Positions 1,694-27,451 of a stretch of DNA of 64,000 nt are shown here, piece by piece. Position numbers and translations under genes: made by a program. Each line of letters begins with the position of its first letter. Position 1 is the stretch's first letter. The stretch comes from Oculina patagonica. Taxonomy: Eukaryota. Under the pieces are notes generated by a model. The model had not been told where the DNA came from and did no database searches. It saw nothing but the letters and a program-made list of their open reading frames with translations. The DNA lies in the NCBI RefSeq assembly GCF_052425735.1, contig NC_135762.1, positions 14,570,001 through 14,634,000 on the forward strand, in the 5' to 3' direction.

Positions 1694-3163
1694 CACAAAA
1701 GTTGCCAGCTATGTTTATTTACGTTAATTTTTGGCAAATTTTCTGAAAATGTTTCAAGACCCTCTTGGGAATTGTCATCGCTTCAGCGATTATCCATTTT
1801 CCCCACTGATAAATTTGCTCAACACAATTTGTTGATGCGGTCAGCGGCAGTACTTTAAAACTAACTTGGCGGCTGGTTTTTCAAAACAAACTTGCTCGAT
1901 TTTCTTTCTTCCATTTGATGCTGCTGTTGTATTCGTCGACCAGAAAAATGTTAAGACGATTATCGTCACTTGTTCCACGGACCACTTCGGACACATTCAG
2001 TATTGATGCGGAGTATGGCAGCAATCAAGCAAGAGGAATTCGAACTCTACCGGACATAACAAGTAGCGTGGCCGAAAAAGGGGAAATAATTTCAAAAGTA
2101 ATGCCATGGAAATGATTCCTTAAAAGAAGAGCGGTGGCAATTTTAAGATGAGACTTAAAATATTCTCCTTTTTTATGATAACATGTTATTTCCGTTTGTG
2201 GATTAAAGTCAGCCGAAGTCGAAATTGATAAAATTTGGAATTGTGCTAGTGACATTTGAGTTCGGTTGTTTGCCGGATTTCTAAAACTTTACTCCGTTTA
2301 TATCTCCTCAAATTCTCGCGTGCTACTAAATATTTTTTCATGGTTTTAAAAAACTATCTTTGTACCTTTCAGAAAAATAGAAGACTTTCTCGGAGTAAGT
2401 CAGAATTTTAAGAAATTTTGATTTCTGCTACGGCCCTTTGCCCGCTACTTGCAAATGGCGTGGACATTGTCTTGTCTAAATGACTATCATTTAAAAAAAT
2501 TGAAATGATTTGATTTGGTTTTGCCACTTGTGTCAAGTACTATGGTATATCTATTACTTGCGTTATTCTTGTATTCGTCCGTTAAATATACGCTTGGCGG
2601 CAAGCATTTAAAATTGGGCTAATTTCGGCTTGCTGAAAGGCCCGTTTTGGGGGTTTCGGATATCGATGACTTTAGCTTCAAAATAAATCTCGAGTATTAT
2701 CAAGAACGAGAACCAACGTAATGTGTTTTCCTTTACCTTATATCAACCTTGTTTGGTGGAGAAATTTTGAAGGAAATCGAATTTTCATCCAACTTGAGCG
2801 GTCGATCCTTACACGGACAGTCACTTAAGTTTCTGTGGAAACGTTTATGCATGGAGCCACTACATACGCTCAAAACGGCGGCTTAAATTCAACTGGAGGA
2901 CAGGTGTTTTTGAATTATTCTGACTGGATGAACGACAGCTTGTAGATAGCTAATTTATTTTTCGTCGTCCAAAGAAGAATATTCATATTTCTGTTGAAAT
3001 TAATATTAAACAACAGTTGCCAAAAATGAAACACAATCTGCTATAATTAAATAGAAAAAAAACATTGAACGATAAGTAACATGATACTTACAAAATGTAT
3101 TTAAGTCCAAGTACGAAAGTAACCATCCAGACATATTTTTGCATTTACAGAATCCTTTATACT

Positions 3164-3586
3164 TGTTCGGGACAATTCACAGAATCTTTTCAACACGCAG
3201 TTGTAAACTCAACGCTTTAATTGCGATGCTCGTTGTACCAATGTACAAACATCTCCACGGCTTGACAACTTAATCGACACGCTGACTTGTTACGCCTACG
3301 GTAAAAAACTGAACAAAACAAACCTAATTTTACAATACATTCGGAATATAAGAAAAAACGGGAACTATGAAATCAAAACTTACATGTTCTGTGCGGTTTA
3401 GGTGGTAAAAACTGTATCAAAAAACAACACTGTCGAGCAATCCGCCCGACACGAAACTCTTTCCATCACAAAACCATGTGCGATCGAGTCACGTGACTCG
3501 ATCCAGTCCGAGCAACTTGTGCACAGTTAATAACGGACCTAAATCAATTTCCGGTTATTAATTTCGGCCGCTAGTCGGCCTCAACA
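3164..3586 (-). repeat. 3' LTR of BEL/Pao element
   Basis: Direct repeat of 10000-10422; TG...CA termini. Confidence 0.97.
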
Positions 3587-3597
3587 TCCACCCCGCC
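3587..3597 (-). other. Polypurine tract (PPT)
   Basis: Element strand reads GGCGGGGTGGA immediately 5' of the 3' LTR. Confidence 0.85.
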
Positions 3598-3668
3598 TTG
3601 GGGCGATCTCCTAAAGCGTCCCAAATATGTGGCTTCTCACATGGACTTCAGGTTACACGCACTTCTTC

Positions 3669-6600
3669 TTACATGGAATTCAGGTCATTTTCTAACAAAC
3701 ATAGTTTCTGTATAGGACGAACATAGACACTGTCCTTAGTTTTAACTTTAACAGTTCGCACCAAGCCATCTGGCCCAGGGTACGTCTCAATGACACGTCC
3801 AAGGTTCCAGTGTCCCCTCGGGGTGTTATCGTTGACTAGCAGCACCAATGCATTGGGTTTAACATTAGGCAACGCCTTTAGCCATTTAGCTCGAGGCTGC
3901 AGGATGGGTAGGTATTCTTTAAGCCATCTTTCCCAAAATAAGTTGGCAAGAAATTGCACCTGCCTCCACTTCTTCTTGTACATGTCAGTCTTGTTGAAGA
4001 CTCCGGGTGGTAAGCAAACAACCTTACGCTGCATCAAGAAGTGGGCTGGCGTCAGTGGCTCAAAATCACTTGGATCATCCGAGTTTGCTGTTAGGGCTCG
4101 GCCGTTCAGAACACGCTCGACCTCAGTAAGCAGCGTCTGCAGGACCGCGTCTGTGACCACATGTCCACCTAGGATAGATTTCAGGACCGTCTTCGCGCTT
4201 CGAACCAAACGTTCCCACACGCCGGACATGCTCGATGCAGTAGGGGGCTGGAATACCCATTTGCAGCCGTATTGGATAAGCTCACTCTCGATCCGTCCCT
4301 GGTTCCATTCATCAAGACTCTCCTTCAACTCGCGCTGAGCTCCGACAAAATTAGAGCCATTATCGCAACGTATCTCTTTCACTTCGCCTCTACGATTGAT
4401 AAAACGCCTCAAGCACAGGATGAAATCGTCGGTGTCCATTGAGTTAACCACTTCTAGGTGGACACAACGAGTGGTTAAGCAGGTGAAGAGACAGCACCAA
4501 CGCTTTGTGGTCCCGCGGCCATGTTTAACGTACAGGAGGCCAAAAAGGTCCATTCCTGAGTACGAGAATGGTGGTTCATATGCCATGAGCCGTGCCTCCG
4601 GTAAAGGTGCCATCTGCTGGACCATGGGTTTGGCAAGGACTTTCTTGCACTTGACGCATCGGCTAAGGACTGTGCGAACTAGAACGCGGATTTGTGGGAT
4701 CCAGAAGTCTTCCCGCAGTTTGGCTATCACATGCTCACGCCCCAAATGGCCAATGAAGTGGTGGACATGACGAACAATCTTCTCAGCTACGGCATGGTTT
4801 CTGGGCAGAATGGTTTGCCGGCCCATAGTAGATTCTGCTACTCTTTTCTGGCCACGTCCATTCACTCTCAGTACTCCCTGGGCATCCAATTCGGGATTCA
4901 AGGCAGCAATCTTGCTCGATGCTCTGACGACACCATTTGACTTCAAATCTTTAATCTCCTGTGTGTATGCTGAGCTCTGGACAATCTTCGCAATAGCCAC
5001 CGTAGCTGCATTCAAATCATCGACGGTTAACCTTCCAGTCACGACCTTGTCTTTATCTCTAATGAACTGTGTAAATCGTAAGAGCCATGCTACCTTGCGT
5101 CTGAGGCGGGTCCAATCTGAGCAGGTTGTTATCAGAACTTGGAGGGGGTGCTCCGCAGGATGAAGGAGGGATTCAAATTCTGGGTTTTCTTTCTTTGCTG
5201 CAGCTGGATCAGGGGTCAGTTCCAGAGAGTGTACATGAGTTTCTTTCTTCAGCTCCAGACCTTCAGTAGGCAAAGTTCTACATTCTTGTCCTGGCCAGGA
5301 GTCTTCTGGTCCCCACAGAAAGTCAGGTCCACGAAGCCAATTGTGGTTGGCGGTCAGAGAAGATGGGGTCATTCCCCTTGACACATAGTCTGCAGGATTC
5401 AAAGTTCCTGGCACATGATTCCAATCTTGCACAAGTGAGTGCTCTTTAATCTCTTCAACTCTGTTAGCTACGAAGGTTTGAAGTCTTCGTTTCTCATTCT
5501 TTAGATAGTGCAGTACTATCTCACTATCAGTCCATAGGAAAGTCCTGTCAATGTTCAGTTCTAATTCTTCTCGTAACATTTTGCACATGCGAGTTGCAAG
5601 TACAGCTGCCTGCAACTCCAGTCTAGGAATACTGACGAACTTCACTGGTGCATTCCTAGCCTTGCCCATAACGAAGGTACAATGGACTCGTCCATCCGTG
5701 TTCTCAACACGCAAATATGATGATGTCCCATAGCCAACCTCAGATGCATCTGAAAAGACATGAAGTTGCAACTTGCATTCTCGCGGGTCATCATCTGGTA
5801 GGAAATAGGATCGCGGGATGAGCAACTGTGATAAGGAAGGTAGCTGAGACTTCCAAGACCTCCACTTCAACAGAGACTCTTCGCTAATGGGTTCGTCCCA
5901 TCCTAAATTGGCCTTCCACAGGTTCTGCACTAAACATCTTGCAGCCAGCGCTACAGGCGCAGCAAACCCTAATGGGTCAAACAAGGAACAAACAGTTGAT
6001 AGGATACCACGTTTGGTCTCGGGGCGGTCAAGGTCCTTTATCTTGAAGCCCAGAGTATCATCTCCAACAAACCAAAGTATTCCCAGCGCTCTTTCAATGG
6101 GTGGATCATCCAAATCGAGGTTAAGTCCTTGCTTGGACAGCTTGTCGCTTGGAACTGCCTTGAGCACTTCCTTTGAATTTGACGTAAACTTAGTCAGGTT
6201 GAAGCTACCTCGGGCAAAGATGTTGACCATGTCTTGAGCCAGGTGAATGGCTGACTGCTCATCATTCTGGGAAGGGAGAGCGTCATCAACATAGAAATTT
6301 CTTTTTACAGCTGCGATGACACTGGGGCTGAAGTCCTCGGCATTGTCGTCAGCGACTCGCCGCAGAGTGGAATTTGCAACACAAGGGGAGGACGCTGCTC
6401 CAAATATGTGTACTTGCATAACATAAACATCGGGTGGGTCTTCATAGCCATTTGTCCACCAAAGGAACCTCAATGAGTCCTGGTCTTCTTTCCGTACACG
6501 TATCTGGTGGAACATTCCTTCAATGTCTGCAGCAATACCAATTGTACCTTGGCGAAAACGCAGGAGAACACCAACTAAACTGTTGGTCATGTCTGGCCCG

Positions 6601-8870
6601 CTTAATAGATTCTTATTAAGCGAAGTTCCTTCGTATTCGGCTGCCGCATCGAAAACTATGCGCACCTTTCCAGGCTTGGTAGGGCTAGTTACCGGGTGAT
6701 GTGGGAGATACCAATGGTTACTGGATTCCGTAGCCAACTCTTTCTCTGACAACTTGCGAGCGAATCCACTGCTGATGTAACCGTCCATTACTTCACGATA
6801 CTTAGTGGCCATCTCCTCGTTACCCGATTTCGTCAAGCGACGTCGCAAGGACTCTAGGCGTTGTTTCGCCATAGCAAGATTATTTGGAAACTGGCGCTCA
6901 TCCTTCTTCCAAAGCATGCCCACTTCATAACGTCCATCGACGAGACGTGTGGTATCTTCAATTATTTGCATTGCTCTCTTGTCTTCAGCTGAGAGGGGCT
7001 TCTCTCCTGACTTAACAGCTCCATGGTCTTCGAGTTTCCAGAATTTCTCAATTAGGTCAACTGGCTTATGATCAACTGAAACAAAGTTTACTGAGACTCC
7101 CTTCGGATCCTTGACGCCATAGCGACCAGCAACGCACCAACCGAGGGGGTATCGACAACCATAGAGTCCTTTCTTCTCATCTTCGGGAACTCTAACTTCT
7201 TTCTGTATGTGCGCGTAGGGGATGTTGTTTCCCACGAGAATGGAGACTCTCTTAACATCAACTGCTGGAAACTCAATGCCACATAAGTGAGGGTAGTTCT
7301 GGACGTCAATTTGCTCTGGCAGGGCTCGCTGTGACTGGTTAAGGTCAGGTAGAACATAGGCTTCAGAAACCTCGATACTTTCTCCAAAACTTTCCAAAGA
7401 GCTCAAGGTAAAGGATACTCGATTAGACTCCACAACATTGTCACTGCTTGTGATTGTATTAATTCTAACCTGCTCAGGTGTTCCTTGTATGTCAAGGTAA
7501 TCAACTAAACTGCGGTCAACGAGGGTGTCAGTACAGCCGCTATCTAGAAAGGCGTAGGTGGAGACAGCATTGCCATTCTCGGCGGTGATAATGACAGGAA
7601 CAACGTTCAACAAAACTTGTGTTTCTGTGGTAGACAAACTGGCAGATGATATGGGTGTTGTTTCAGGTTTGCCTGAATTAGCACTTGCAGTTTGCCCCGT
7701 ATTTACGCCCTCGTGACTTGTGGGATAGGAGGTAGCTGAAGGCTTGTCACCTTTATCCTTGGAATCCTTATTGATCGGTGGGTTGGGGCGGCGACTATCC
7801 TGGGTCTGATCAGTATGCAGAAGACTAAGATGACGACCAGGGCATTTTGAACATGCTGGCGGTTCAGGGCAAGAACCAGAACCGTGTCCAGGCCTTTCAA
7901 GGCCACAGTTAAAACAAAATCCACAAGATGCCGCATACTGTCGTCGGACTGCCACATGTTCACACTTCTTGATGATGGGGCAATGCTGAAGCTTGTGTCG
8001 CTTAGATTTACAGATTCCACAGTTTTTTGAGCTAGGGGCAGGAAGTTTAGTTTCAACATCCGTGGCACTGATTGTGCGATTCTTTAGTTGCTTTGGTGGA
8101 GGTGGAGGCTTAGGAGGCAACTTGGTTTCTTTATTCTCACGCTTCAACATTTGACCTCCAAACACCGGGTCGTTCCTAATGGATGCTTGTCTCTTTACAA
8201 AGGCGGCGATGTCCTTCAGCCGAGGAGACCTTCCGCTCTTGACAATCACATAATTCTCGTTTTGCCACTTGATGATGAGATCATTAGGCAGACGGCTAAC
8301 TATGCGCCTAAGGTTCGTTGCAACACTTGCTTCACGTTCAACGTCGCCTTGAAGGATTCTTGTAGCCGCATTCAGCTTCTCAGAAAAGTTCGTAAGTCCA
8401 ATATTGTCACCATAGGTCAACTTGGGACCTGATACGAGGTCTTCTATGCATGCTTGAGTCACCCTTATGGTCTGACCAAAGCGTTCCTCCAGGGTTTTCA
8501 TGATGTCGATGAAGGAGCAACCTCTGTTTCGTTTTACCACTTCCAATGCTTCTCCGGTAACAAACTTAGGGAGGTATTCAACACGCTGGGCATCAGTTAG
8601 CAAATCGCTTTCAAGGTGCGTACAAATTTGTTCACGAAAGGAGGGAAAATCCACTGGATTTCCACTAAACTGTGTCGGTCGCATTCCACTTAGCATTTGT
8701 GCCTTCCACATTGCTGCAACGGGATCATGTGGGACCTGTTCACCACGAGTAACACCCTGTGATGGTTTAACACCAGGTACTCTAAAGGACTGGAGTGACC
8801 TTATGCTGTCAGGGGTCTTACGCACATTAGATCCTATCGCTGAGAGGGATGACCTCGGCTGAGTTGTCAT
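3669..8870 (-). CDS. BEL/Pao Gag-Pol polyprotein (1733 aa): Gag core, 3 zinc knuckles, aspartic protease, RT, RNase H, integrase
   Basis: FSGNPVDFPSF (Gag); CGICKSKRHKLQHC, CFNC-x6-H-x4-C and CSKCPGRHLSLLH knuckles; AFLDSG protease; YLPHHPV, RIVFDAAA, DIEGMFHQI, FGAASSP, FYVDD (RT); FSDAS, PRLELQAA, WTDS (RNase H); HHCC region, GMDLFG, CDNGSNFVG, WERLVRS (integrase). Confidence 0.95.
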   Translation of the reverse strand: MTTQPRSSLSAIGSNVRKTPDSIRSLQSFRVPGVKPSQGVTRGEQVPHDPVAAMWKAQMLSGMRPTQFSGNPVDFPSFREQICTHLESDLLTDAQRVEYLPKFVTGEALEVVKRNRGCSFIDIMKTLEERFGQTIRVTQACIEDLVSGPKLTYGDNIGLTNFSEKLNAATRILQGDVEREASVATNLRRIVSRLPNDLIIKWQNENYVIVKSGRSPRLKDIAAFVKRQASIRNDPVFGGQMLKRENKETKLPPKPPPPPKQLKNRTISATDVETKLPAPSSKNCGICKSKRHKLQHCPIIKKCEHVAVRRQYAASCGFCFNCGLERPGHGSGSCPEPPACSKCPGRHLSLLHTDQTQDSRRPNPPINKDSKDKGDKPSATSYPTSHEGVNTGQTASANSGKPETTPISSASLSTTETQVLLNVVPVIITAENGNAVSTYAFLDSGCTDTLVDRSLVDYLDIQGTPEQVRINTITSSDNVVESNRVSFTLSSLESFGESIEVSEAYVLPDLNQSQRALPEQIDVQNYPHLCGIEFPAVDVKRVSILVGNNIPYAHIQKEVRVPEDEKKGLYGCRYPLGWCVAGRYGVKDPKGVSVNFVSVDHKPVDLIEKFWKLEDHGAVKSGEKPLSAEDKRAMQIIEDTTRLVDGRYEVGMLWKKDERQFPNNLAMAKQRLESLRRRLTKSGNEEMATKYREVMDGYISSGFARKLSEKELATESSNHWYLPHHPVTSPTKPGKVRIVFDAAAEYEGTSLNKNLLSGPDMTNSLVGVLLRFRQGTIGIAADIEGMFHQIRVRKEDQDSLRFLWWTNGYEDPPDVYVMQVHIFGAASSPCVANSTLRRVADDNAEDFSPSVIAAVKRNFYVDDALPSQNDEQSAIHLAQDMVNIFARGSFNLTKFTSNSKEVLKAVPSDKLSKQGLNLDLDDPPIERALGILWFVGDDTLGFKIKDLDRPETKRGILSTVCSLFDPLGFAAPVALAARCLVQNLWKANLGWDEPISEESLLKWRSWKSQLPSLSQLLIPRSYFLPDDDPRECKLQLHVFSDASEVGYGTSSYLRVENTDGRVHCTFVMGKARNAPVKFVSIPRLELQAAVLATRMCKMLREELELNIDRTFLWTDSEIVLHYLKNEKRRLQTFVANRVEEIKEHSLVQDWNHVPGTLNPADYVSRGMTPSSLTANHNWLRGPDFLWGPEDSWPGQECRTLPTEGLELKKETHVHSLELTPDPAAAKKENPEFESLLHPAEHPLQVLITTCSDWTRLRRKVAWLLRFTQFIRDKDKVVTGRLTVDDLNAATVAIAKIVQSSAYTQEIKDLKSNGVVRASSKIAALNPELDAQGVLRVNGRGQKRVAESTMGRQTILPRNHAVAEKIVRHVHHFIGHLGREHVIAKLREDFWIPQIRVLVRTVLSRCVKCKKVLAKPMVQQMAPLPEARLMAYEPPFSYSGMDLFGLLYVKHGRGTTKRWCCLFTCLTTRCVHLEVVNSMDTDDFILCLRRFINRRGEVKEIRCDNGSNFVGAQRELKESLDEWNQGRIESELIQYGCKWVFQPPTASSMSGVWERLVRSAKTVLKSILGGHVVTDAVLQTLLTEVERVLNGRALTANSDDPSDFEPLTPAHFLMQRKVVCLPPGVFNKTDMYKKKWRQVQFLANLFWERWLKEYLPILQPRAKWLKALPNVKPNALVLLVNDNTPRGHWNLGRVIETYPGPDGLVRTVKVKTKDSVYVRPIQKLCLLENDLNSM

Positions 8871-9945
8871 GCTGAACTGGATGGTTAGGAGGGATTGGCT
8901 CTTTCTGAGAAGGATTTAGTTGAGACACCTCACTAATAGCATAACTGGCACCTGGGTTGGTATTAGGTCTGCTGGTCTCCATTTTCTCAGAAACGACTGG
9001 GGTAGAATGTGGACGTTTATCAACTAGAAATGTGGCAGCATCCAAAGGACCAGCTGCTCCAGGTGTCAAAGCTTCCTCATCGTTGTACTCCATTTCAATT
9101 TTCCATTCTAGCTCAGCTAATGTTGCTTGCTCTTCAAGACGCCTAAGTTCCATTCTTTGTTTATGTTCGTATGCCATTCGAGCTGCTTCGGCTTCTTCCT
9201 TTGCCCTAGCCCTTGCTAGGTCCAATTTCATTTTTGAGACAAGCACCTTTTTCAAGGATTTCTTACGTGAGGATCCGGACACATTGGAAGACTTAGAGGA
9301 AACTGACACATTGTCATCACGATCCCCGTCCTGGTCTAGTAGTCCAGGATTCATCTGAGCATTTCCAGGCAAAAGGTCTATTTTTTGCAACAAACCTTCA
9401 CACTCATCAATAATGTCACGGGTCTCTCGTTTTAGATTGGAATAACGACTCTGTACATCTTCCAAGCGTTCTCTCTCATTTATCCCAGCAAGGTATTTCG
9501 TATGTAGCCCTTCGAGTGTCTTCCATTTTTCCGAGAGTAGGTCAAGGTATTTCTTAGCCTCCTCTGGGCCTTGGCTGGTATTAAGCTTAGACTGAATTTC
9601 TTTCAGTAAATTTTCAATTTCTTTGCTTACATTTGTCCACAGCATAGCCGTGCTGAGTTGCTCCCGGGAATCCCTTTGCCGTTCCAATTCCGTGAAATCG
9701 ACGCGGGTGTTTGGTGGGGGCCTGGGTCTGAGCGAGGGGCCATCGTAGTAGTTTAATGGCCGAGTAAACACATTTGTTGTAGTACAAATGGAACTAATGT
9801 TACCTTCTACGGCTTCTACTGTCGTCGTTCCGGGAAAATCGGGCAATCCACGATCCATTCCTGGTCCAGCATAACCCAAACGGCTCAAACCATAAACATC
9901 CATTCCACTATCGAGGCCGAAATCCAATTGATCCGACGCATCCAT
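8827..9945 (-). CDS. N-terminal Gag region of the BEL/Pao element (coiled-coil), out of frame with the main polyprotein
   Basis: First ATG at 9945, 55 nt downstream of the 5' LTR. Charged coiled-coil (LARARAKEEAEAARMAYEHKQRMELRRLEEQ) and Ser-rich linker. Overlaps the next ORF by 44 nt in another frame. Confidence 0.8.
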   Translation of the reverse strand: MDASDQLDFGLDSGMDVYGLSRLGYAGPGMDRGLPDFPGTTTVEAVEGNISSICTTTNVFTRPLNYYDGPSLRPRPPPNTRVDFTELERQRDSREQLSTAMLWTNVSKEIENLLKEIQSKLNTSQGPEEAKKYLDLLSEKWKTLEGLHTKYLAGINERERLEDVQSRYSNLKRETRDIIDECEGLLQKIDLLPGNAQMNPGLLDQDGDRDDNVSVSSKSSNVSGSSRKKSLKKVLVSKMKLDLARARAKEEAEAARMAYEHKQRMELRRLEEQATLAELEWKIEMEYNDEEALTPGAAGPLDAATFLVDKRPHSTPVVSEKMETSRPNTNPGASYAISEVSQLNPSQKEPIPPNHPVQHDNSAEVIPLSDRI

Positions 9946-9999
9946 CGCTCGACAAATCCAATCACAATCCAATATTTAGGAAGAACATTTTTTTACTGA

Positions 10000-10422
10000 T
10001 GTTCGGGACAATTCACAGAATCTTTTCAACACGCAGTTGTAAACTCAACGCTTTAATTGCGATGCTCGTTGTACCAATGTACAAACATCTCCACGGCTTG
10101 ACAACTTAATCGACACCCTGACTTGTTACGCCTACGGTAAAAAACTGAACAAAACAAACCTAATTTTACAATACATTCGGAATATAAGAAAAAACGGGAA
10201 CTATGAAATCAAAACTTACATGTTCTGTGCGGTTTAGGTGGTAAAAACTGTATCAAAAAACAACACTGTCGAGCAATCCGCCCGACACGAAACTCTTTCC
10301 ATCACAAAACCATGTGCGATCGAGTCACGTGACTCGATCCAGTCCGAGCAACTTGTGCACAGTTAATAACGGACCTAAATCAATTTCCGGTTATTAATTT
10401 CGGCCGCTAGTCGGCCTCAACA
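10000..10422 (-). repeat. 5' LTR of BEL/Pao element
   Basis: Direct repeat of 3164-3586. Contains a 22-bp palindrome, GTAAGT...TTCAG intron-like signals and an ATTAAA poly(A)-like signal on the element strand. Confidence 0.97.
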
Positions 10423-10712
10423 TCACTTTCTATGCAAATTGTTCTCCTTGAGGTCTTCCTCTGTAATTGCATTTCACTACGGAAAAGGCTCTAGAAGACT
10501 GCGATATTCAGACATGATATCATTTTTATTATCAAAAAAGAGATAACCACAAGTTGCTTCTTATACACCCACACTTATAAACCTGAGGGCTTCGATGTTT
10601 ATTGTTACGCACTTAAATAAACAAAAAATAATAATCATATCAAATCATATCACAAGTAACGGAAAGCATTGGAGATGCACGACGCAGTAATGGAAGCAAG
10701 GAATGGTTGTTG

Positions 10713-11762
10713 TTATAATGTAGTTTCCATATTGGTGGAACTCTTCTTCCGTCTGACTGTAATAATGGATTTCAGACTGAGGTTTTTACGAATCTGGCGC
10801 ATAAAAGTGGAGCAAATACATGGATTCACTATGCAATGACACAATGAAAACATAATGGCAAACTGAACAAATATTTCAAAGCTTAGACTGCAGCGCGGGA
10901 TTGAGCTTGAAAAATAAAGATGAATAAACTGTAAAGCAAGAAAAGGTAACCAGCACGAGGCAAATGCCAAAACGATCACTGCAGACATTTTAAGCAGCTT
11001 TTTGTTCCTTTTCTTGTGTCGTTGATTGACGATGGAAGTACGAAAAGGCGCCATTTCATCGTTCCTTAATTTCAGCAAGGTTATAGTTTGTAACATAGAA
11101 ACTGTTACTAGTGGCACAATCAAAACAGTAACTAGTAACGCAGTGTAATAGCGGGAATGTGTTAACTCGTGATTGAAGGCCGGCTCCCAGTTTGTGATGC
11201 AGAAAGTTTCTCCATTTCTTGTCTCCAAACTGAAAGTGTAGAAATATGGGGAGTGAATCGCCATCGCTAAAATCCAAGTCGAAAAGATGAGGATTCGTCG
11301 CTTTTTGACAGTGATTCGACGATATCTTCGTGGGAATACCACAGCGACCAACCTATCAATGGTAATTAGAACCAAGGACAGTGTGGACACAGCAATGGTG
11401 ACATCCGCGACTAAAGCACAAATCTTACAGAGCATCTCCCCAATCCAACCGTGGACTACAAAAACCGGCGACTCTTTAATATGAACCACTATCTCTCGAG
11501 GAAAGTGAGCTATGGAGAACAATAAATCTGAAATAGCTATGTTGGCCAAGATCAGGTTCATCGTCAAATTCGATTTTAGTGAGGCGAAGATAAGCAGGGT
11601 ATTTCCCACGAGCGAAGCAATCAGAAGGACACTGTATATGGTAGCAAAACTTATCATGATAGCCACAAAATCAACAGAAATCAAACACGTGCTATTTTGG
11701 GCATTGTGGCCTTGAAACTCCTCATCCTTTAAGGTTGTTGTTGAGCTGTTGTTGGCGAACAT
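10713..11762 (-). CDS. Intronless class A (rhodopsin-like) GPCR, neuropeptide-receptor-like, 349 aa
   Basis: ATG at 11762 (MFANNSS, N-glycosylation sequons). Seven hydrophobic segments; GN (TM1), NIAISDLL (TM2), C3.25, DRL, W4.50, CWLP (TM6), NPCIC (TM7). Confidence 0.92.
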   Translation of the reverse strand: MFANNSSTTTLKDEEFQGHNAQNSTCLISVDFVAIMISFATIYSVLLIASLVGNTLLIFASLKSNLTMNLILANIAISDLLFSIAHFPREIVVHIKESPVFVVHGWIGEMLCKICALVADVTIAVSTLSLVLITIDRLVAVVFPRRYRRITVKKRRILIFSTWILAMAIHSPYFYTFSLETRNGETFCITNWEPAFNHELTHSRYYTALLVTVLIVPLVTVSMLQTITLLKLRNDEMAPFRTSIVNQRHKKRNKKLLKMSAVIVLAFASCWLPFLALQFIHLYFSSSIPRCSLSFEIFVQFAIMFSLCHCIVNPCICSTFMRQIRKNLSLKSIITVRRKKSSTNMETTL

Positions 11763-15182: not shown

Positions 15183-15880
15183 TTAACCTATGCATTTCAG
15201 ACCAAAACGAATCCGGCGTATCAAAGTGAAGCAAATACATGGTTTCACTATACAATGACACAACGAAAAAAGAATGACAAACTGACTAAATATTTTAAAA
15301 CCTAGATTGCAATGTGGAATTAAGTTTGAAAAGTAAAGGTAAAGAAACTGAAAGGCAATAAAAGGTAACCAGCACAAAGCAAATGCCGAAGCGACCGCTA
15401 TAGACATCTTTAGCAGCATTTTGTTTTTCTTTTTGTGCCGTTGATTGGTTATAGTAGCCGAAATAGCGCCATTTTGTCGTCTCTCAGTTTCACCAAGATT
15501 ATTGTCTGAAGTATGCACACTGTTACTATAGAGACACAATCAAAACAGTAACTAGTAACGCAGTCTATTAGCGGGTATGTGTTGTTTCGTGATTGAAGGC
15601 AGGCTCCCAGTTGTGAAACAGAAAGTTTCGCTATTTTTTGTGTCTAGTTCAAAGATCAAAAGATATAGAAATACGAAGAATAAATTGCAATCGCTAAGAT
15701 CGAAGTACAAAGGATGAAAAGCCAACGCTTTGTGGCAGTGATTCGACGATGTAGTCTTGGAAATACAACGACGACCAACCTATTAGCGGTAATAAGAACC
15801 AAGGAGCTCGAGAGTGTAGACACAGCGCGTGAGAAAGGCACAAATCTTTGAAAGAGTCTGACCGATCCATCCGTGGTCCA
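15183..15880 (-). pseudogene. 5'-truncated, frameshifted GPCR pseudogene, paralogue of 17653-18655
   Basis: Fragments in several frames (ITANRLVVVVFP; ALCWLPFIAFQF...KPCICFTLIRRIRFGLKCIG) match the 17653 copy. Stops and indels present; N-terminal part missing. Confidence 0.9.
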
Positions 15881-17652: not shown

Positions 17653-18655
17653 TCAACCAATGCACTTTAAACCAATACGAATGCGGCGTATGAAAGTGAA
17701 GCAAATACATGGATTCACTATGCAATGACACAACGAAAAAAGAACGACGAACTGACCAAATATTTCAAAACCTAGACTACAACGTGGAATTAAGCTCGAA
17801 AAGTAAAGATAAATGAACTGAAAAGCAATAAAAGGTAACCAGCACAAAGCAAATGCCGAAGCAATCGCAATAGACATCTTTAGCAGCATTTTGTTCTTCT
17901 TTTTGTGCCTTCGATTGGTGATAGCAGCACGAAAAAGCGCCATTTTGTCGTCTCTCAGTTTCACCAAGATTATTGTCTGAAGTATGCACACTGTTACTAG
18001 TGGCACAATCAATACAGTAACTAGTAACGCAGTGTAGTAGCGGGTATGAGTTAGCTCGTGATTAAAGGCCGGCTCCCAGTTGGTGATACAAAACGTTTCG
18101 CCATTTTTTGTAGCCAATTCGAAGGTATAGAAATATGGAGAATGAATTGCCATCGCTGAAATCCAAGTACATAAGATAAAAAACCAACGCTTTTTTACAG
18201 ATATTCGACGATATTGTCTTGGAAATACAACGGCGACCAACCGATCAGCGGTAACTAGAACCAAGGACAGTGTAGACACAGCAATGGAAACATCTGTGAC
18301 AAAGGCACAGATTTTACAGAGGGTCTGACCAATCCATCCGTGGACCAGAAAAACCGGCGACTCTTTTATATGAACCACAATCTCACGAGGAAGGCGAATT
18401 ATGGAGAACAACAAATCTGAAGCTGCTATGTTTGTTATTAAAAGGTTGATTGTCATTCTACTCGATTTTAGGGAAGCTATAGAAAGGTAAAGAATTCCCC
18501 ACGACTGAAGCAATCAAAATGAGAGTGTATATAGAAGCAAAACTTATCATGATTGCATCTGGATCTATTGCTAGCGAACAGGTTCCATTTTCTTCCTTTT
18601 GTCCTTGAAGTACGGTAATAACGGGGGAGCTTGTTGAGCTGTTGTTGGCGAACAT
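17653..18655 (-). pseudogene. Class A GPCR with a single 1-nt frameshift in TM1 (recent pseudogene or assembly indel)
   Basis: ORF 18458..18655 (MFANNSS...VVGNSL) joins ORF 17653..18513 (LSIASLKS...DRL...CWLP...NPCIC) if one base at ~18486 is removed. Close paralogue of 10713-11762. Confidence 0.85.
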
Positions 18656-20809: not shown

Positions 20810-23800
20810 TAAAAATAAGCTTGAATCTACGGCGTGGTCCTATTTCAAAACTAGTGCCCAAATTCGTTAATTTCAGTGGCTCATGTACTACTTTCGTACT
20901 TAATTCGTTTGGGCCTGGAGTTAAAAATCAGTCTAAATTTAATCTGCGCGATGGTGGTTTTTCGAAAAGACGCAACCGGTACATTTCAAATCTCAAATTG
21001 GCCAGATTTGCTTGTACTGGAGTGAAAATATGGTTTAATCTAAGTTGTGGTATTTCAACACTACGGCCCGAACTCGTCATTTTCAGTGGCTCTGGTAGGA
21101 CTTTCGTATTAGATTCTTTTAGACCGGGAGTGAAAATCATGATAAATCCAGGTGATGGCGGTTTGTCCTAAAAAAAACCCAAACTGTAAATTTTAACTCT
21201 CAAACTGGACGGATATGCTTGATCCGGAGTGAAAATATGCCTCAATTTACCAGGTGGTATTTCAACACAAGGGCCCGAAATCATTATTTTGTGTCTCGTA
21301 ATTGTCGTCATGGAGTAAAAATCATGATGAATCCACGTGATAACCGTTTTTTTCAAAAACTCCCAAAATGCACATTTAAAGTGTCAAACTGGCCAGATTT
21401 GCTTGATCAGGAGGGAAAATAAAATTAATATACGTGGTGGTATTTCAACAAAAGGGCCTAATATAGTCATTTTCAGTGTCCCATGAACCACTTTCGTACT
21501 CAATTCTTTTGGACCCAAAGTGAAAATTAGTCTAGTCTGAATTCACGTGATATAAGTTAATCAGAAAGACCCAAACTGTACATTTCAAGACTCAAACAGG
21601 CCGGATTTTCTTCAACCGGAGTAAAAATAAGATTAAATCTATGTGGTGGTATATTAACACAAGGGCCCAAAATCGTCAATTTGAGTGGCTCGTGTAGCAC
21701 TTTCTTATTCGATTCTTTTGGACCAAGAATAAAAATCATGATGTATCCACGTGATGGCTGTAGTTTCAAAAAAGTCGCAAACTGTACATTTCAAGTCTCA
21801 AACTGGCCGGATTTCCTTGGTCAGTAGTGAAAATAACGGTGCTAGTATTTCAACAAAAGGGCATAGTAAAGTCACTTTGAGTGGCCTGAAGCATTTTCGT
21901 ACTTCATTCTTTTGGACCTGGAGTGAAAATTTGCCTGAATCCACGTGGTGGCAGTTTTTCAAAAAAAAAAACGAACTGCACCTTTCAATTCTCAAACTGG
22001 CTGGATTTGCTTGAGCTGGAGTAAAAATATGCCTTAAGATATAAGATAGAGAATGGAACGCAACGGCCCAGAAATCGTCATTTTCAGTGGCTCATGTAGC
22101 ACTTTTGTTATTCGCTTTTTTCACGATCCCATAATACATCTTGTTTTATTTAAATAACCCCCCAAAATGTTTGCATAAGCATTGTTTTCAATTTCTCTGG
22201 GGACGATTGCACGTCACTGTAAATCCCAAGAGAAATTGAAAACAATGCTTATGCAAAAATTTTGGGGGGTAAACAAGATGTATTATGGGAACGGTGAAAA
22301 CAGCGAATTCGACTTTTCTAGACCTGGAGTGAAAATTACGAAAACTTTAAGTGATGACAGTTTTTCGATAACATCCAAACGGTACATTTCAAGACTCAAA
22401 CAGGCCGGATTTGCTTGATCAGGAGTAAACATTAGATTAAATCTACGTGGTGTGATTTTAACACAAGGGCCCAAAATCGTCATTTTCAGTAGCCATTGTG
22501 GCACTTCTTATTCGATTGTTCCCGAAGTAGAGTGAAAATAACGACGAATCCACGTCATGGCAGTTTCTCGAAAAGGCCCAAACTGTACATTTCAAGTCTC
22601 ACTCTGGCCAAATTTTCTTGATCTCGAGTGAAAATATGCTTTATCTACGTGGTGGTATCTCAACAAAAGGGCCTTATATAGTCATTTTCAGTGGCTCATG
22701 AACCACTTTGGTACTCCATTCTTTTGGGCCTGGATTGAAAATTGGCCTGAATCAACGTGATGGTGGTTTTACAAAACAACCAAAACTGTACATTTCAAGT
22801 CTTTAACTGGCAGGATTTTTTGATCTAGAGTGAAATAAGTTTTAAAATTATTTAATTATACGTGGTGGTATTTCAACAAAAGCGCCTTATATAGTCATTT
22901 CCAGTGGCCCATGAACCACGTTCGTACTCCATTCTTTTGGACCTACAGTGAAAATTAGTCTGAATCAACGTGATGGCGGTTTTTTAAAAAGATCCAGACT
23001 ATACTTTGCGCTGGCCAGATTTGCCTGATCAAGAGTGAAAAAAGGTTTAATCTACGGCGGTATTTCAACACAAGGGAATAAAATTGCATTTACAGTGGCT
23101 CATGTAGCACTTTCTTTTTTGATTCTTTTTGACCAAGAGTGAAAGACACAATGTAACCATGTGATGGTGCTTTTTTTAATAAAATCCAAACTGTACACTT
23201 CAAGTCTCAAAACTGGCCGGTTTTGCTTGAACCGGTGTAAAAAGTGGCCTTAATCCACGTGGTGCTACTTCAAAACTAGGGCCCAAAATCGTCATTTTCA
23301 GTGGCTCATGTAGCACTTTCCTAGTCGATTCTTTTGGACCTGTATTAAAATCATGTTGAATTCACGTGATGGCGGTGTTTCAAAAATACCAAAACTGTAC
23401 ATTTCAAGTGTCACACTGGCCAGATTTTCTTGGTCGCAAGTGAAAATATGCTTAAATCTACGTGGTGGTATCTCAACAAAAGTGCCTGAAGTAGTCATTT
23501 TCAGTGACTCATGTAGCACTTTCTTATTTGATTCTTTTGGACCTGGAGTGAAAATCACGATGAATCCAAGTGATGGTGGTTTTTCAGAAGGACCCAAACT
23601 GTATATTTCAAGTCTCGAACTGGCCGTATTTGCTTGAACCGGAGTGAAAATAAGCTTTAATTTACCAAGAAAGAAAATTAAGATGAATCCATGTGATGAC
23701 GGTTTTTGAAAAGAACCAAACTGTACACTTCAAGTATCGAACTGGCCGGAATTGCTTGATCCAGAGTGAAAATATGCTTTAATCTACGTGGTGTTATTTC

Positions 23801-23812
23801 AAAAAAGGCTTC
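20810..23812 (+). repeat. ~204-bp satellite array, block 1
   Basis: Recurring motifs GGTGGTATTTCAACACAAGGGCCC, CATTTTCAGTGGCTCATGT, GGACCTGGAGTGAAAA, AATCCACGTGATGG, AAACTGTACATTTCAAGTCTCAAACTGGCC. Confidence 0.95.
22110..22308. mobile_element. Palindromic MITE inserted in the satellite
   Basis: ~90-bp inverted arms (CCCATAATACATCTTGTTT...TTTGCATAAGCATTGTTTTCAATTTCTCT / AGAGAAATTGAAAACAATGCTTATGCAAA...AAACAAGATGTATTATGGG) interrupt a satellite unit at ATTCG. Confidence 0.85.
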
Positions 23813-23829
23813 TTTTGTGAAAATCGTGA

Positions 23830-24565
23830 CAGGCCCGTAACCAGTAATTTGCATAGAAGGGTGCGTATGAGCGCCTCCGGCGCGAAATCTAGATCTTTAG
23901 CGCAACAGGCGTGATAACGTAGGCGGGGGTCTGGGGGTATCCTCCCCAAGGAAATGTTGAAAAATAGGTTATCTGAGACAGCATTTCGTGCGTTTGATGA
24001 CAGTTGGTTAGGAAAAAGGCAGGTAAATATGAAGGTAACAACGACAATAGTTCTGGTACATTTTTTAATTTAAATCGTATTTTTCGAAACACAACCTTGA
24101 AACGTAATTTACAAGTTATTTAGCTAACAATGACGGCAGTACAAAAAAGGAAGACAGGAAAAAAGATAAGTTTCTTCATTTCAGTATCAATTGGTAATTA
24201 CGTAAATCAGCCAGAAGCGGTTTGTTGATCTCTTAGCATTAGCACTGTGGCAAGCTCCAACATTCTTGGGTGCTTCAGAGCCCAACAAGTACTCAGTCTC
24301 CTCCCTTTTTGGTAGCGCCTAGGAATATTTATGGCACTTCGAACAATTCGACAATAAAGATCAATGACGGACATTAGGTAGAATGTATCGTTCAAATAAC
24401 CTAGAATCACCGAATTTAATCCAACATATACCACGCCAATCTACAAATGGTGGACCTTCAACCAAAAGGATAATATTGAATAAGAATATTCTCTTAATTT
24501 ATTTATTTTAATATATGTATTTTTTTTACAATAAGCGGACTTCCAAGTCTCGTGGGGTAAAGGGG
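23830..24565 (+). mobile_element. Truncated non-autonomous DNA transposon (hAT-like 5' end) in the satellite
   Basis: Non-satellite insert starting CAGGCCCGTAACCAG with a GGGGGTCTGGGGGTATCCTCCCC motif; no matching right TIR seen. Confidence 0.45.
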
Positions 24566-27451
24566 TAAACTGTACATTTCAAGTCTCAAACTTGCCGGAT
24601 TTGGTTAAACCGGAGTAAATATAAGCTTTAATCTACGTCGTGGTATATTTACACAAGGGCCCAAAATCGCATTTTTCAGTGGCTAATGTACCACTTTCCC
24701 GTACGATTCTTTTGGACCTGGATAGAAAATTATTATGAATCAACGTGATGCCATTTTTTCAAAAAGACCAAAACGGTAGATTGCAAGTCTCAAACTGGCC
24801 GGTTTTGCTCAATCTTAAATAAAAATAAGCTTTAATCCAAGTGGTGGTATTTCAACACAAGGGCCCAAAAATCATCATTTTCAGTGGCTCATGTAACACT
24901 TTCCTGTACGATTCTTTTGGACTTGGATTGAAAATTAGGATAAATCCACGTGATGGCGAATGTTCAAAAAGAACCAAACTGTACATTTCAAGTCTCAAAC
25001 TGGCCGGTTTTGCTGGATCTGAAATGAAAATAAGCTTTAAACCACGTGCTGGTATTTCAACACAAGGGCCCAAAAATCGTCATTTTAAGTAGCCCATGTA
25101 ACACTTTTTCCGTACAATTCTTTTGGACATGGAGTGAAATTTAGGACAAATCCACGTGATGGCAGAATTTCAAAGAGAACCATTAGGATAAATCTACGTG
25201 ATAGCGGATTTTCAAAAAGACACAAAATGTAGATTTACAAGTCTCAAACTGGCCGGTTTTGCTGGATCTGAAATGAAAATAAGCTTTAATCCATGTGGTG
25301 GTATTTCAACACAAGGGCCCAAAAATCGTCATTTTAAGTGGCCCATGTAACACTCTTACCGTACAATTCTTTTGGACATGGAGTGAAATTTAGGACAAAT
25401 CCACGTGATGGCAGAATTTCAAAGAGAACCATTAGAATAAATCTGCGTGATGGCGGATTTTCAAAAAGACACAAACTGTAGATTTAAAGTCTCAAACTGG
25501 CCGGTTTTGCTGGACCTGGAGTGAAAATAAGCTTTAATCAACGTGGTGCACGGTATTTCAACACAAGGGGCAAGAAACGTCATTTTCAGTGGCTCAGGTA
25601 ACAATTACCCGTACATTTCTTTTTGACCTGGAGTGAAAATTAGGATGAGTCAACGTGATGCCATTTTTCTCAAAAAGACCCAAAGTATAGATTGCAAGTC
25701 TCAAACGGGCCGGTTTTACTGGACCAGCAGTAAAAATAAGCTTTAATCAACTTGGTGGTATTTCAACACAAGGGTCCAAATATCGTCATTTTAAGTGGCT
25801 AAAATAGTACTTTCCCGTTCGATTCTTTTGGACGTGGTGAGGAAAATAGGATGAGTCCACGTGATGCCATGTTTTAAAAAAGAACCTAACTGTAGATTAA
25901 AAGTTTCAAACTTGCCGGTTTTACTGGATTCGAAATGAAAATAAGCTTTAATCCACGTGGTGGTATTTCAACACAACGGCCCAAAATTTTCATTTTCAGT
26001 GGTTCATGTAGCACTTTCCTGTACGATTGTTTTGGAACTAAAGTGAAAATTAGGATTAATCCACGTGTTATCGGATTTTCAAAAATACCCAAACAGTAGA
26101 ATTAAAGTCTCAAACTGGCCGGTTTTGCTTGAACAGGAGTCAAAATAACCCTAAATCTACCTGGTGGCATTTTACACATGGGCCCGAAATCGTCATTTAC
26201 AGTGGCTCATGTAACACTTTCCTGTACGATTCTTTTCGACCTGGAGTGAAAATTAGGATATTTCCACGTGATGGCGGATTTTCAAAAAGACCCAAACTGT
26301 AGATTTCAAGTCTCAAATTGGCCGGTTTTGCTGGATCAGGAGTGACAATTAGCCCAACACTACGTGGTGCTATTTTTACACAAGGGCCCGAAATCGTCAT
26401 TTTCAGTGTCTCATGTAACACTTTCTTGTACGATTCTTTTCGACCTGGAGTAAAAATTAGGATACTCCACGTGATGGCAGATTTTCAAAAAGACCCAAAC
26501 TGTAGATTTTAAGTCTCAAACTGGCCGGTTTTGCTGGATCTGAAATGAAAATAAACTATTATCCACGTGGTCGTATTTCAACACATGGGCCCCAAAATCG
26601 TCATTTTCAGTGGCTCAAATAGCACTTTCTTGTACGATTCTTTTGGACCTGGAGAGAAAATTAGGATGAGTCCACGTGATACCATTTATTCACACAGACC
26701 GAAACCGTAGATTTGCGCGCAGTCTCAAACTGGCCGGTTTTGCTGGATCTGAAATGAAAATAAGCTTTAATCTACGTGGTGGTATTTCAACACAAGGGCC
26801 CAAAAATCGTCATTTTTAGTGGCACATGTATCACTTTCCTGTACGATTCTTTTGGACCTGGAGTGAAAATTAGGATAAATCCTCATAATGGCGGATTTTC
26901 AAAGATAACCAAACTGTAGATTTCAAGTCTCAAACTGGCCGGTTTTGCTGGACCAGGAGTGAAAATTAGCCTAACTCTACGTGGTGGTATTTTCACACAA
27001 GGGCGCGAAATCATCATTTACAGTGGCTCATGTAACACTTTCCTGTACGATTCTTTTGGACCTCGAGTTTAAATTAGGATAAATCCACGTGATGGTGTAT
27101 TTTCAAAAAAGACCCAAACAGTAAATTTCAAGTCTCAAACTGGCTGGTTTTGCTGGATCAGGAGTCAAAATCAGCCTAAATTTAGGTGGTGGTATTTTCA
27201 CACATGAGCCCGAAATCGTCATTTTCATTGGCTAGTGTAACACTTTCCTGTACGATTCTTTGGACCTGGAGTGAAATTAGGGTAAGTCCATGTGATGACG
27301 GATTTTCAAAAAGACCCAAACTGTAGATTTCAAGTCTTCAACAGGCCAGTTTTGCTGGATTTGAAATGGAAATAAGCTTTTATACACGTTGTGGTATTTC
27401 AACACAAGGGCCCAAAAATCGTCATTGTTAGTGGCTCATGTAATACTTTCT
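24566..27451 (+). repeat. ~204-bp satellite array, block 2
   Basis: Same unit; period of 204 bp measured between 26881 and 27085. Confidence 0.95.

Follow-up and report, generated by a model that had tools for sequence, protein, structure and literature searches.

A BEL/Pao retrotransposon on the minus strand

The window, that is the whole stretch of 64,000 nucleotides of Oculina patagonica DNA that was analysed, contains a minus-strand LTR retrotransposon of 7.26 kb, and the presumptive self-priming feature described below lies at the 5' end of this element (Table 1). The architecture of a BEL/Pao element is present throughout: a coding region between the LTRs, TG...CA ends and a polypurine tract. 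The 5' LTR ends in ...CCCGAACA, a terminus at which about 30 other genomic copies of the LTR also end. Comparison with Pfam identified DUF1759 (gag), Peptidase_A17 (5.9e-50), RT, Integrase_H2C2 and DUF5641 (1e-31); matches to rve and RVT_1 were also seen but below the curated cut-off. An earlier reading made from the sequence only had taken the element for a BEL/Pao retrotransposon, and the domain set agrees with it: both the set and the order of the domains confirm, at the level of sequence, that the element belongs to BEL/Pao (Belpaoviridae). Its closest named protein relatives are BEL/Pao polyproteins of stony corals and of one sea anemone. No sign of membership in the Tf1/sushi group of Ty3/gypsy was found, as Pfam assigns the element to Pao and its best homologues are cnidarian BEL/Pao elements.

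Table 1. Features of the element, all on the minus strand. Positions are those of the window; positions within the LTR are given in brackets.
Feature	Position	Strand	Remarks
5' LTR	10000..10422	-	423 bp, TGTTG...GAACA; aligned to the 3' LTR, one mismatch
Palindrome GAGTCACGTGACTC, E-box core	10322..10335	-	in presumed U3; conserved among close LTR families
First CAG-T-run motif TACAGTTTTTACC	10240..10252 (LTR 171-183)	-	5' of the intron; candidate start site; shared by closely related LTR families
Exon-1 primer half AGAACAT	10220..10226 (LTR 197-203)	-	directly 5' of the donor
Intron of spliceosomal type, 75 nt	10145..10219 (LTR 204-278)	-	GTAAGT donor, pyrimidine tract and CAG acceptor
Exon-2 primer half TTTTTTAC	10137..10144 (LTR 279-286)	-	directly 3' of the acceptor, within the second CAG-T-run motif
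Putative polyadenylation signal ATTAAA	10052..10057 (LTR 366-371)	-	by motif
Spacer TCA, 3 nt	9997..9999	-	between the LTR terminal CA and the PBS
Primer-binding site (PBS) GTAAAAAAATGTTCT	9982..9996	-	perfect complement of the joined halves; conserved in full-length copies
gag-pol coding region	3669..9945	-	two overlapping frames in the window copy, 9945-8827 and 8870-3669
Purine-rich tract AAGGCGGGGTGGA	3587..3599	-	abuts the 3' LTR; presumed plus-strand primer, by position
3' LTR	3164..3586	-	by alignment to the 5' LTR
3' LTR copy of the intron	3309..3383	-	LTRs identical there; offset 6836

The 529-Mb genome holds about 10 full copies of the window family, together with many LTRs and diverged LTR families, and the many young copies suggest that the system is active. 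Several of the other copies encode a single unbroken polyprotein frame of about 2106 aa. At the point where the frame is split in the window (8827-8890), contigs from other copies carry extra letters; since other genomic copies have a continuous frame, the window copy is probably defective. Within the LTR, the placement of the ATTAAA motif predicts that R ends near LTR 385-395 and that U5 is short, and the E-box core has counterparts, CACGTG or CATGTGAC, in the LTRs of families B, D and E.

Several minor features of the locus were recorded on the way. The 5-bp flanks of the element are unequal (AGTGA at 10423-10427, AGTAT at 3159-3163), in contrast to those of the solo LTR described below, possibly owing to change after insertion or to recombination between copies. 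A dispersed repeat of 300-600 bp is present in three copies of 72-84% identity just outside the 5' flank of the element (10787-11378, 15206-15805 and 17676-18267), and tandem-like repeats of about 200 bp (D1-D6, 60-82% identity), unrelated to the element, form a long array at 20943-25000. In one run (X8), summed contig depth at 9813-10260, a segment that covers the 3' two-thirds of the LTR and the start of gag, exceeded that over the remaining element by a factor of 7-9, perhaps owing to related LTR families or to a short, abundant RNA.

The presumed primer-binding site complements a predicted exon junction in the LTR

Immediately downstream of the LTR the element reads TCAGTAAAAAAATG, without TGG, and no TGG-type site occurs in TCAGTAAAAAAATGTTCTTCC, the sequence that follows ...CCCGAACA, or anywhere in the 54-nt leader between the LTR and the gag ATG. 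The sequence-only reading had already noticed that a tRNA-type site is absent, and had proposed that transcription starts at a CAGT motif of the LTR and that the unspliced 5' end of the RNA, AGUUUUUUAC, folds back onto GUAAAAAA to prime reverse transcription as in Tf1. The two CAG-T-run motifs on which this proposal was built are indeed found at 10252-10240 (TACAGTTTTTACC) and 10149-10135 (TTCAGTTTTTTACCG), CAGT is initiator-like, and 8 nt are complementary. However, these 8 nt (TTTTTTAC) are the longest contiguous match between the LTR and the PBS, and a match of this length is not above chance: when the first 14 post-LTR bases were compared with the T-rich LTR, 35% of 2000 dinucleotide-preserving shuffles reached 8 nt (P ~0.35).

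The second motif, taken as initiator-like, is a 3' splice acceptor, with a GTAAGT donor 75 nt upstream. When LTR 204-278 is removed, the sequences on either side join to AGAACAT^TTTTTTAC (the caret marks the junction), which is a perfect 15-nt reverse complement of 9996-9982; without splicing only 8 nt match. The complement begins 3 nt past the LTR terminal CA. Thus the pairing that had appeared short and A/U-rich is a 15-mer, the other half of which, AGAACAT, lies upstream of the intron, and removal of the intron explains the extra A and the ATGTTCT of the PBS that contiguous pairing leaves over. All 15 of 15 positions of the site are therefore complementary to the element's own LTR-derived RNA once the intron is taken out. 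In an alignment of diverged LTRs, few parts are as well conserved as the block around the second motif, and 75 nt upstream of it a block ACAT/GTAAGT (the slash marks the splice site) is conserved as well.

Of the original proposal, then, the Tf1-like principle held, in that the PBS position complements the element's own LTR and no tRNA-type site is present; the anatomy did not. Folding of an unspliced 5' end onto the PBS leaves unaccounted for the seven further complementary bases beside the donor, fails in families without a T-run (see below) and invokes a motif that is located at the acceptor site; moreover, since the host is a cnidarian, the argument from the arthropod TCAGT initiator is not transferable. 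We consider this earlier model very improbable. The first CAGT motif (LTR 171-183) is still, as far as its sequence goes, one candidate transcription start. It was also observed that this motif upstream of the donor (CAGTTTTTACC, 10240-10252) nearly repeats the acceptor and the start of exon 2 (CAGTTTTTTACC, 10135-10149); an old duplication, an alternative acceptor or a start site may lie behind the near-repeat.

How far could such a junction match arise by chance? In a very permissive null model, in which every GT..AG pair was allowed, the maximum over 300 trials was 11-12 nt, against the 15 nt observed; across the null runs, matches at a junction come to 10-13 nt by chance, so that single families are only modestly significant alone. 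The case, as read from these sequences, rests on a common canonical intron, a fixed position of the PBS and covariation between the two.

A retrotransposed copy of the spliced LTR was found. A solo LTR (L022:1501-1849, at G000:C8:11210852-11211200) lacks exactly LTR 204-278 and reads ...CAGAACATTTTTTTACCG... across the junction; it is flanked by a perfect 5-bp target duplication, TATTG. The precise loss of the 75 nt indicates that a spliced RNA was reverse-transcribed. No other intronless LTR of the window family was found in the genome, and a search for intronless copies of family B gave two matches with one mismatch against one in the control, which is the level expected by chance. Contigs from sequencing runs, which also extend over the flanks of the element and so look like DNA, show neither a joint between 10220 and 10144 nor molecule ends.

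Junction and primer-binding site covary across BEL/Pao families

The layout, in which the LTR holds an intron and the PBS complements the exon junction, recurs with dissimilar sequences in about 18 other BEL/Pao families. Families B, C, D, E, G and I all obey this rule with their own sequences. Family B, from the same genome and with 38% gag identity, reads CAC AGAAT/GTAAGT...TTAG/TTTTCAC in its LTR and TT-GTGAAAAATTCT after it; compared with the window family, a 2-nt indel is mirrored on both sides of the pairing (AGAACAT vs AGAAT, with partners ATGTTCT vs ATTCT). In family C, AACAT^TTTTTCA pairs with TGAAAAAATGTT, and contigs of public assemblies with homologous polyproteins carry the junctions AAAAT^TTTTCAC, AGAAT^TTTTCAC and CAGATT^TTTTCAC. 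Families without any A-run have the same layout, as in a family at 38% pol identity, where AATTCG^TGAAC faces GTTCACGAATT. The locus L055, of 29% identity, was left out of the interpretation. The in-genome comparison covered part of the BEL/Pao content of the genome, which holds about 750 further candidates.

We extended the comparison with an RT profile search of metagenome contigs, which yielded 80 coral-associated BEL/Pao loci. These loci were scanned blindly for canonical introns of which the two flanks, once joined, are complementary to a sequence located 30-400 nt further downstream, with the complemented, unreversed sequence as control. A junction-spanning complement of at least 11 nt was detected in 21 of the 80 loci; the control gave a single match, at 11 nt, and none longer. 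Among the matches are CAAA^TTCGAAC, AAATATCT^TCAAAC, CACAGTTTT^TTGAAT and CACT^GATTGTTAC, each with a perfect partner, and several loci that the scan missed have the same type of PBS next to a damaged or truncated LTR. Contiguous complements of the Tf1 type were not enriched in the LTRs (15 loci vs 10 in the control). The spacer between the LTR CA and the PBS is mostly 2-4 nt in the other families and five in L135.

A pairing profile was then drawn up for 22 loci with about 18 different primer sequences. The core, made of positions -4 to -1 of exon 1 and +1 to +5 of exon 2, is Watson-Crick paired in all 22, without one G:U among about 260 core pairs. This pairing is kept while the bases change: three or four types of pair occur in eight of the nine core columns and two in the ninth (exon-2 +1). 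Outside the core, pairing drops to chance beyond 11-15 nt. The donor is GTAAGT in 19 of the 22 loci, and the introns measure 67-164 nt.

This pattern bears directly on the possibility that a cellular RNA (a tRNA, a tRNA half or an snRNA) acts as the primer. In its favour, the ICTV description of Belpaoviridae gives an 18-nt PBS complementary to tRNA-Arg or tRNA-Gly (PMC8742986), and a sister clade does carry TGG-type sites (see below). Priming by tRNA-Arg or tRNA-Gly is a descriptive feature of the family that does not exclude membership, and the coral site shows nothing of it, having no TGG and containing an A7 run; a cellular primer would need a U7 run. Such a run is a Pol III terminator and is impossible inside a tRNA gene. 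Furthermore, the genome contains the 15-mer no more often than its control (19 occurrences each); five of the 19 are the element's own sites, and none of the 10 non-element matches examined falls in an Rfam family or a tRNA. Last, the PBS varies in step with each family's own LTR, so that no common host RNA fits. Priming by a half tRNA, as in copia-like elements, is likewise spoken against by the U-run argument and by the element-specific covariation. On these grounds we consider a cellular primer very improbable.

A model for priming by a spliced leader

In our best reading, which we hold to be probable, this BEL/Pao element primes itself in the manner of Tf1, using a primer that has to be made contiguous by splicing. 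We infer the start of transcription, the splicing of the 5' copy, the priming duplex and its cleavage as follows. The transcript of the 5' LTR would consist of a short exon 1 ending in AGAACAT, the 75-nt intron and an exon 2 starting with TTTTTTAC; splicing of this leader would build the 15-nt primer stretch, and this stretch would pair with the PBS, which lies about 150 nt further on and 3 nt beyond the LTR. In Tf1, the PBS complements the first 11 nt of the element's own RNA, and RNase H cuts between nt 11 and 12 (PMC7175516); by analogy, the RNase H of the coral reverse transcriptase would cut after ...AC and provide a 3'-OH (PMC7175516). Synthesis would proceed through the spacer and U5 and along R as far as the cut, and then jump to the 3' R; for everything 5' of the cut, the intron among it, the template would be the 3' LTR copy in the RNA. 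Progeny would thus keep the intron, and a rare spliced 3' copy would give rise to an intronless LTR. The PBS itself would be rewritten at each cycle by plus-strand copying of the primer, which would explain why the covariation is perfectly Watson-Crick, why G:U pairs are missing and why the complementarity stops so sharply. We know of no demonstration that a BEL/Pao RNase H cuts an RNA duplex, a point against the model, as is the finding of a single intronless LTR.

An alternative is that the duplex between junction and PBS is a regulatory or packaging structure of the RNA, for instance one by which the RNA switches between translation and packaging, and that the true primer is a different one. 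Long-range pairings of the 5' leader are common in retroelements. However, in all families the site lies a few nt, mostly 2-4, past the LTR CA, and minus-strand synthesis must begin there to yield the observed LTR end; the 54-nt leader contains no other candidate PBS. The lack of any G:U in the core is moreover expected of templated copying and not of selection at the RNA level. We therefore regard a purely regulatory duplex as unlikely.

The predicted folds separate spliced from unspliced leaders. For spliced leaders beginning where the complementarity begins, the predicted minimum-energy fold includes the duplex in 14 of 17 families; with 25 upstream nt added, it does so in nine of the 17. 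Among the folds of unspliced leaders, the full duplex appears in none of the 17 families, and partial bipartite pairs appear in three. The latter pairs are what would be expected if both halves bound the PBS on unspliced RNA, with the 75 nt looped out as a third arm, and the primer were cut from there; indeed, the halves flank a segment in every family and a three-way junction is geometrically possible. Against this stand, besides the missing full duplex, the near-invariant GTAAGT and the pyrimidine tract with YAG acceptor in LTRs that are otherwise unalignable, the one precisely spliced LTR copy, and the consideration that copying of such a primer would yield no contiguous PBS. We give bipartite pairing without splicing little credit, and return to priming by a spliced leader.

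Where the RNA would begin was approached from the sequences around the 5' edge of the pairing. This edge is preceded by a conserved CAC in the clade of the window family. Families B, D and L111 have a TATA box 29-31 nt upstream of it, which together with the CAC speaks for a start at the edge; TATA-like motifs at -42, -65 and -70 in families E, I and G, respectively, speak against it, as does the fact that many edges do not resemble initiators. The folding predictions favour a start at the edge of the complementarity, and plus-strand transfer would be simplest with such a start; the counter-argument is that exon 1 would then measure 4-9 nt, which is unusually short for splicing. A start well upstream would leave a non-complementary 5' tail on the primer and would complicate plus-strand transfer.

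A stricter version of the model, which we put forward only tentatively, would have transcription start at the first complementary base, so that a capped micro-exon of 4-9 nt is spliced to the first 5-9 nt of exon 2 and the spliceosome itself builds the primer. The primer would then be formed by the 11-15 nt at the very head of the spliced RNA, exactly as in Tf1, and only spliced RNA could be reverse-transcribed, the unspliced 3' copy passing the intron on. Splicing would in that case be a switch gating replication in a clade of cnidarian BEL/Pao elements that is both large and old.

Relation to known priming systems

The closest parallels are Tf1 and Tf2 of Schizosaccharomyces pombe and the Tf1/sushi group, which likewise have no tRNA site and in which the post-LTR PBS complements the element's own 5' RNA over 11-15 nt. 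Tf1/sushi elements are, however, Ty3/gypsy elements with a contiguous complement, whereas the coral element belongs to BEL/Pao and its complement is assembled across an exon junction. For Tf1/sushi, the Tcn1 chromoviruses and the plant elements TAR, Houba and Osr-1, self-priming has been predicted from a 5' LTR complement of at least 10 nt located 0-5 nt past the LTR (PMC6317226). The Tcn1, TAR, Houba and Osr-1 lineages fall within Ty3/gypsy and Ty1/copia, and searches for contiguous matches of this kind would miss the split type. Experimentally, self-priming has so far been established only for Tf1 and Tf2, with predictions for a few Ty3/gypsy and Ty1/copia lineages; on our best reading, it is new for BEL/Pao.

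A splice donor in the LTR-derived leader has precedents among viruses. Foamy viruses and HTLV/BLV have their major splice donor inside R and the acceptor far downstream, and their subgenomic mRNAs lose the PBS. The coral element resembles them in having a donor upstream of the PBS, but differs in that its LTR holds both donor and acceptor, and what splicing produces is the pairing partner of the PBS. The position of the PBS is also familiar, as those of ERVs sit a few nt past the LTR terminal CA as well (PMC7472051).

Our literature search found no report of self-priming or of a spliced self-primer in BEL/Pao, within an incomplete full-text coverage that leaves room for an earlier description, and the main survey of BEL/Pao elements says nothing about primer sites, tRNA or introns (PMC3118150). 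Nor did we find any primer described that is present solely at a junction of two exons; such a primer would tie splicing directly to reverse transcription. Both of the usual annotation rules, a TGG or tRNA match and a contiguous LTR complement of at least 10 nt, overlook the split type. The rule that junction and PBS match is simple and can be tested throughout cnidarian genomes. In addition, without a tRNA-type PBS the element would escape silencing by tRNA fragments that target this site (PMC7472051).

In gene content and order, TG...CA LTRs and polypurine tract the coral element is the same as canonical Belpaoviridae, from which it differs by the absence of the tRNA-type PBS. In the sister clade (L117, L119, L120 and L124), LTRs are short and a conventional TGG-type site, TGGTC.A.TCGAGCCGG, stands just after the LTR, though unmatched to any tRNA. 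In the unrooted RT tree, this TGG-type group is set off from all split-type families by a single branch (support 100/97). The largest clade with split primers (L092, L095, L097, L101, L107, L108, L115, L128 and others) has the PBS core GTTCGAA, in which TTCGAA is palindromic. This core resembles the consensus of the tRNA T-loop, a likeness that, speculatively and judged from the motif, might hint at the origin of the split type.
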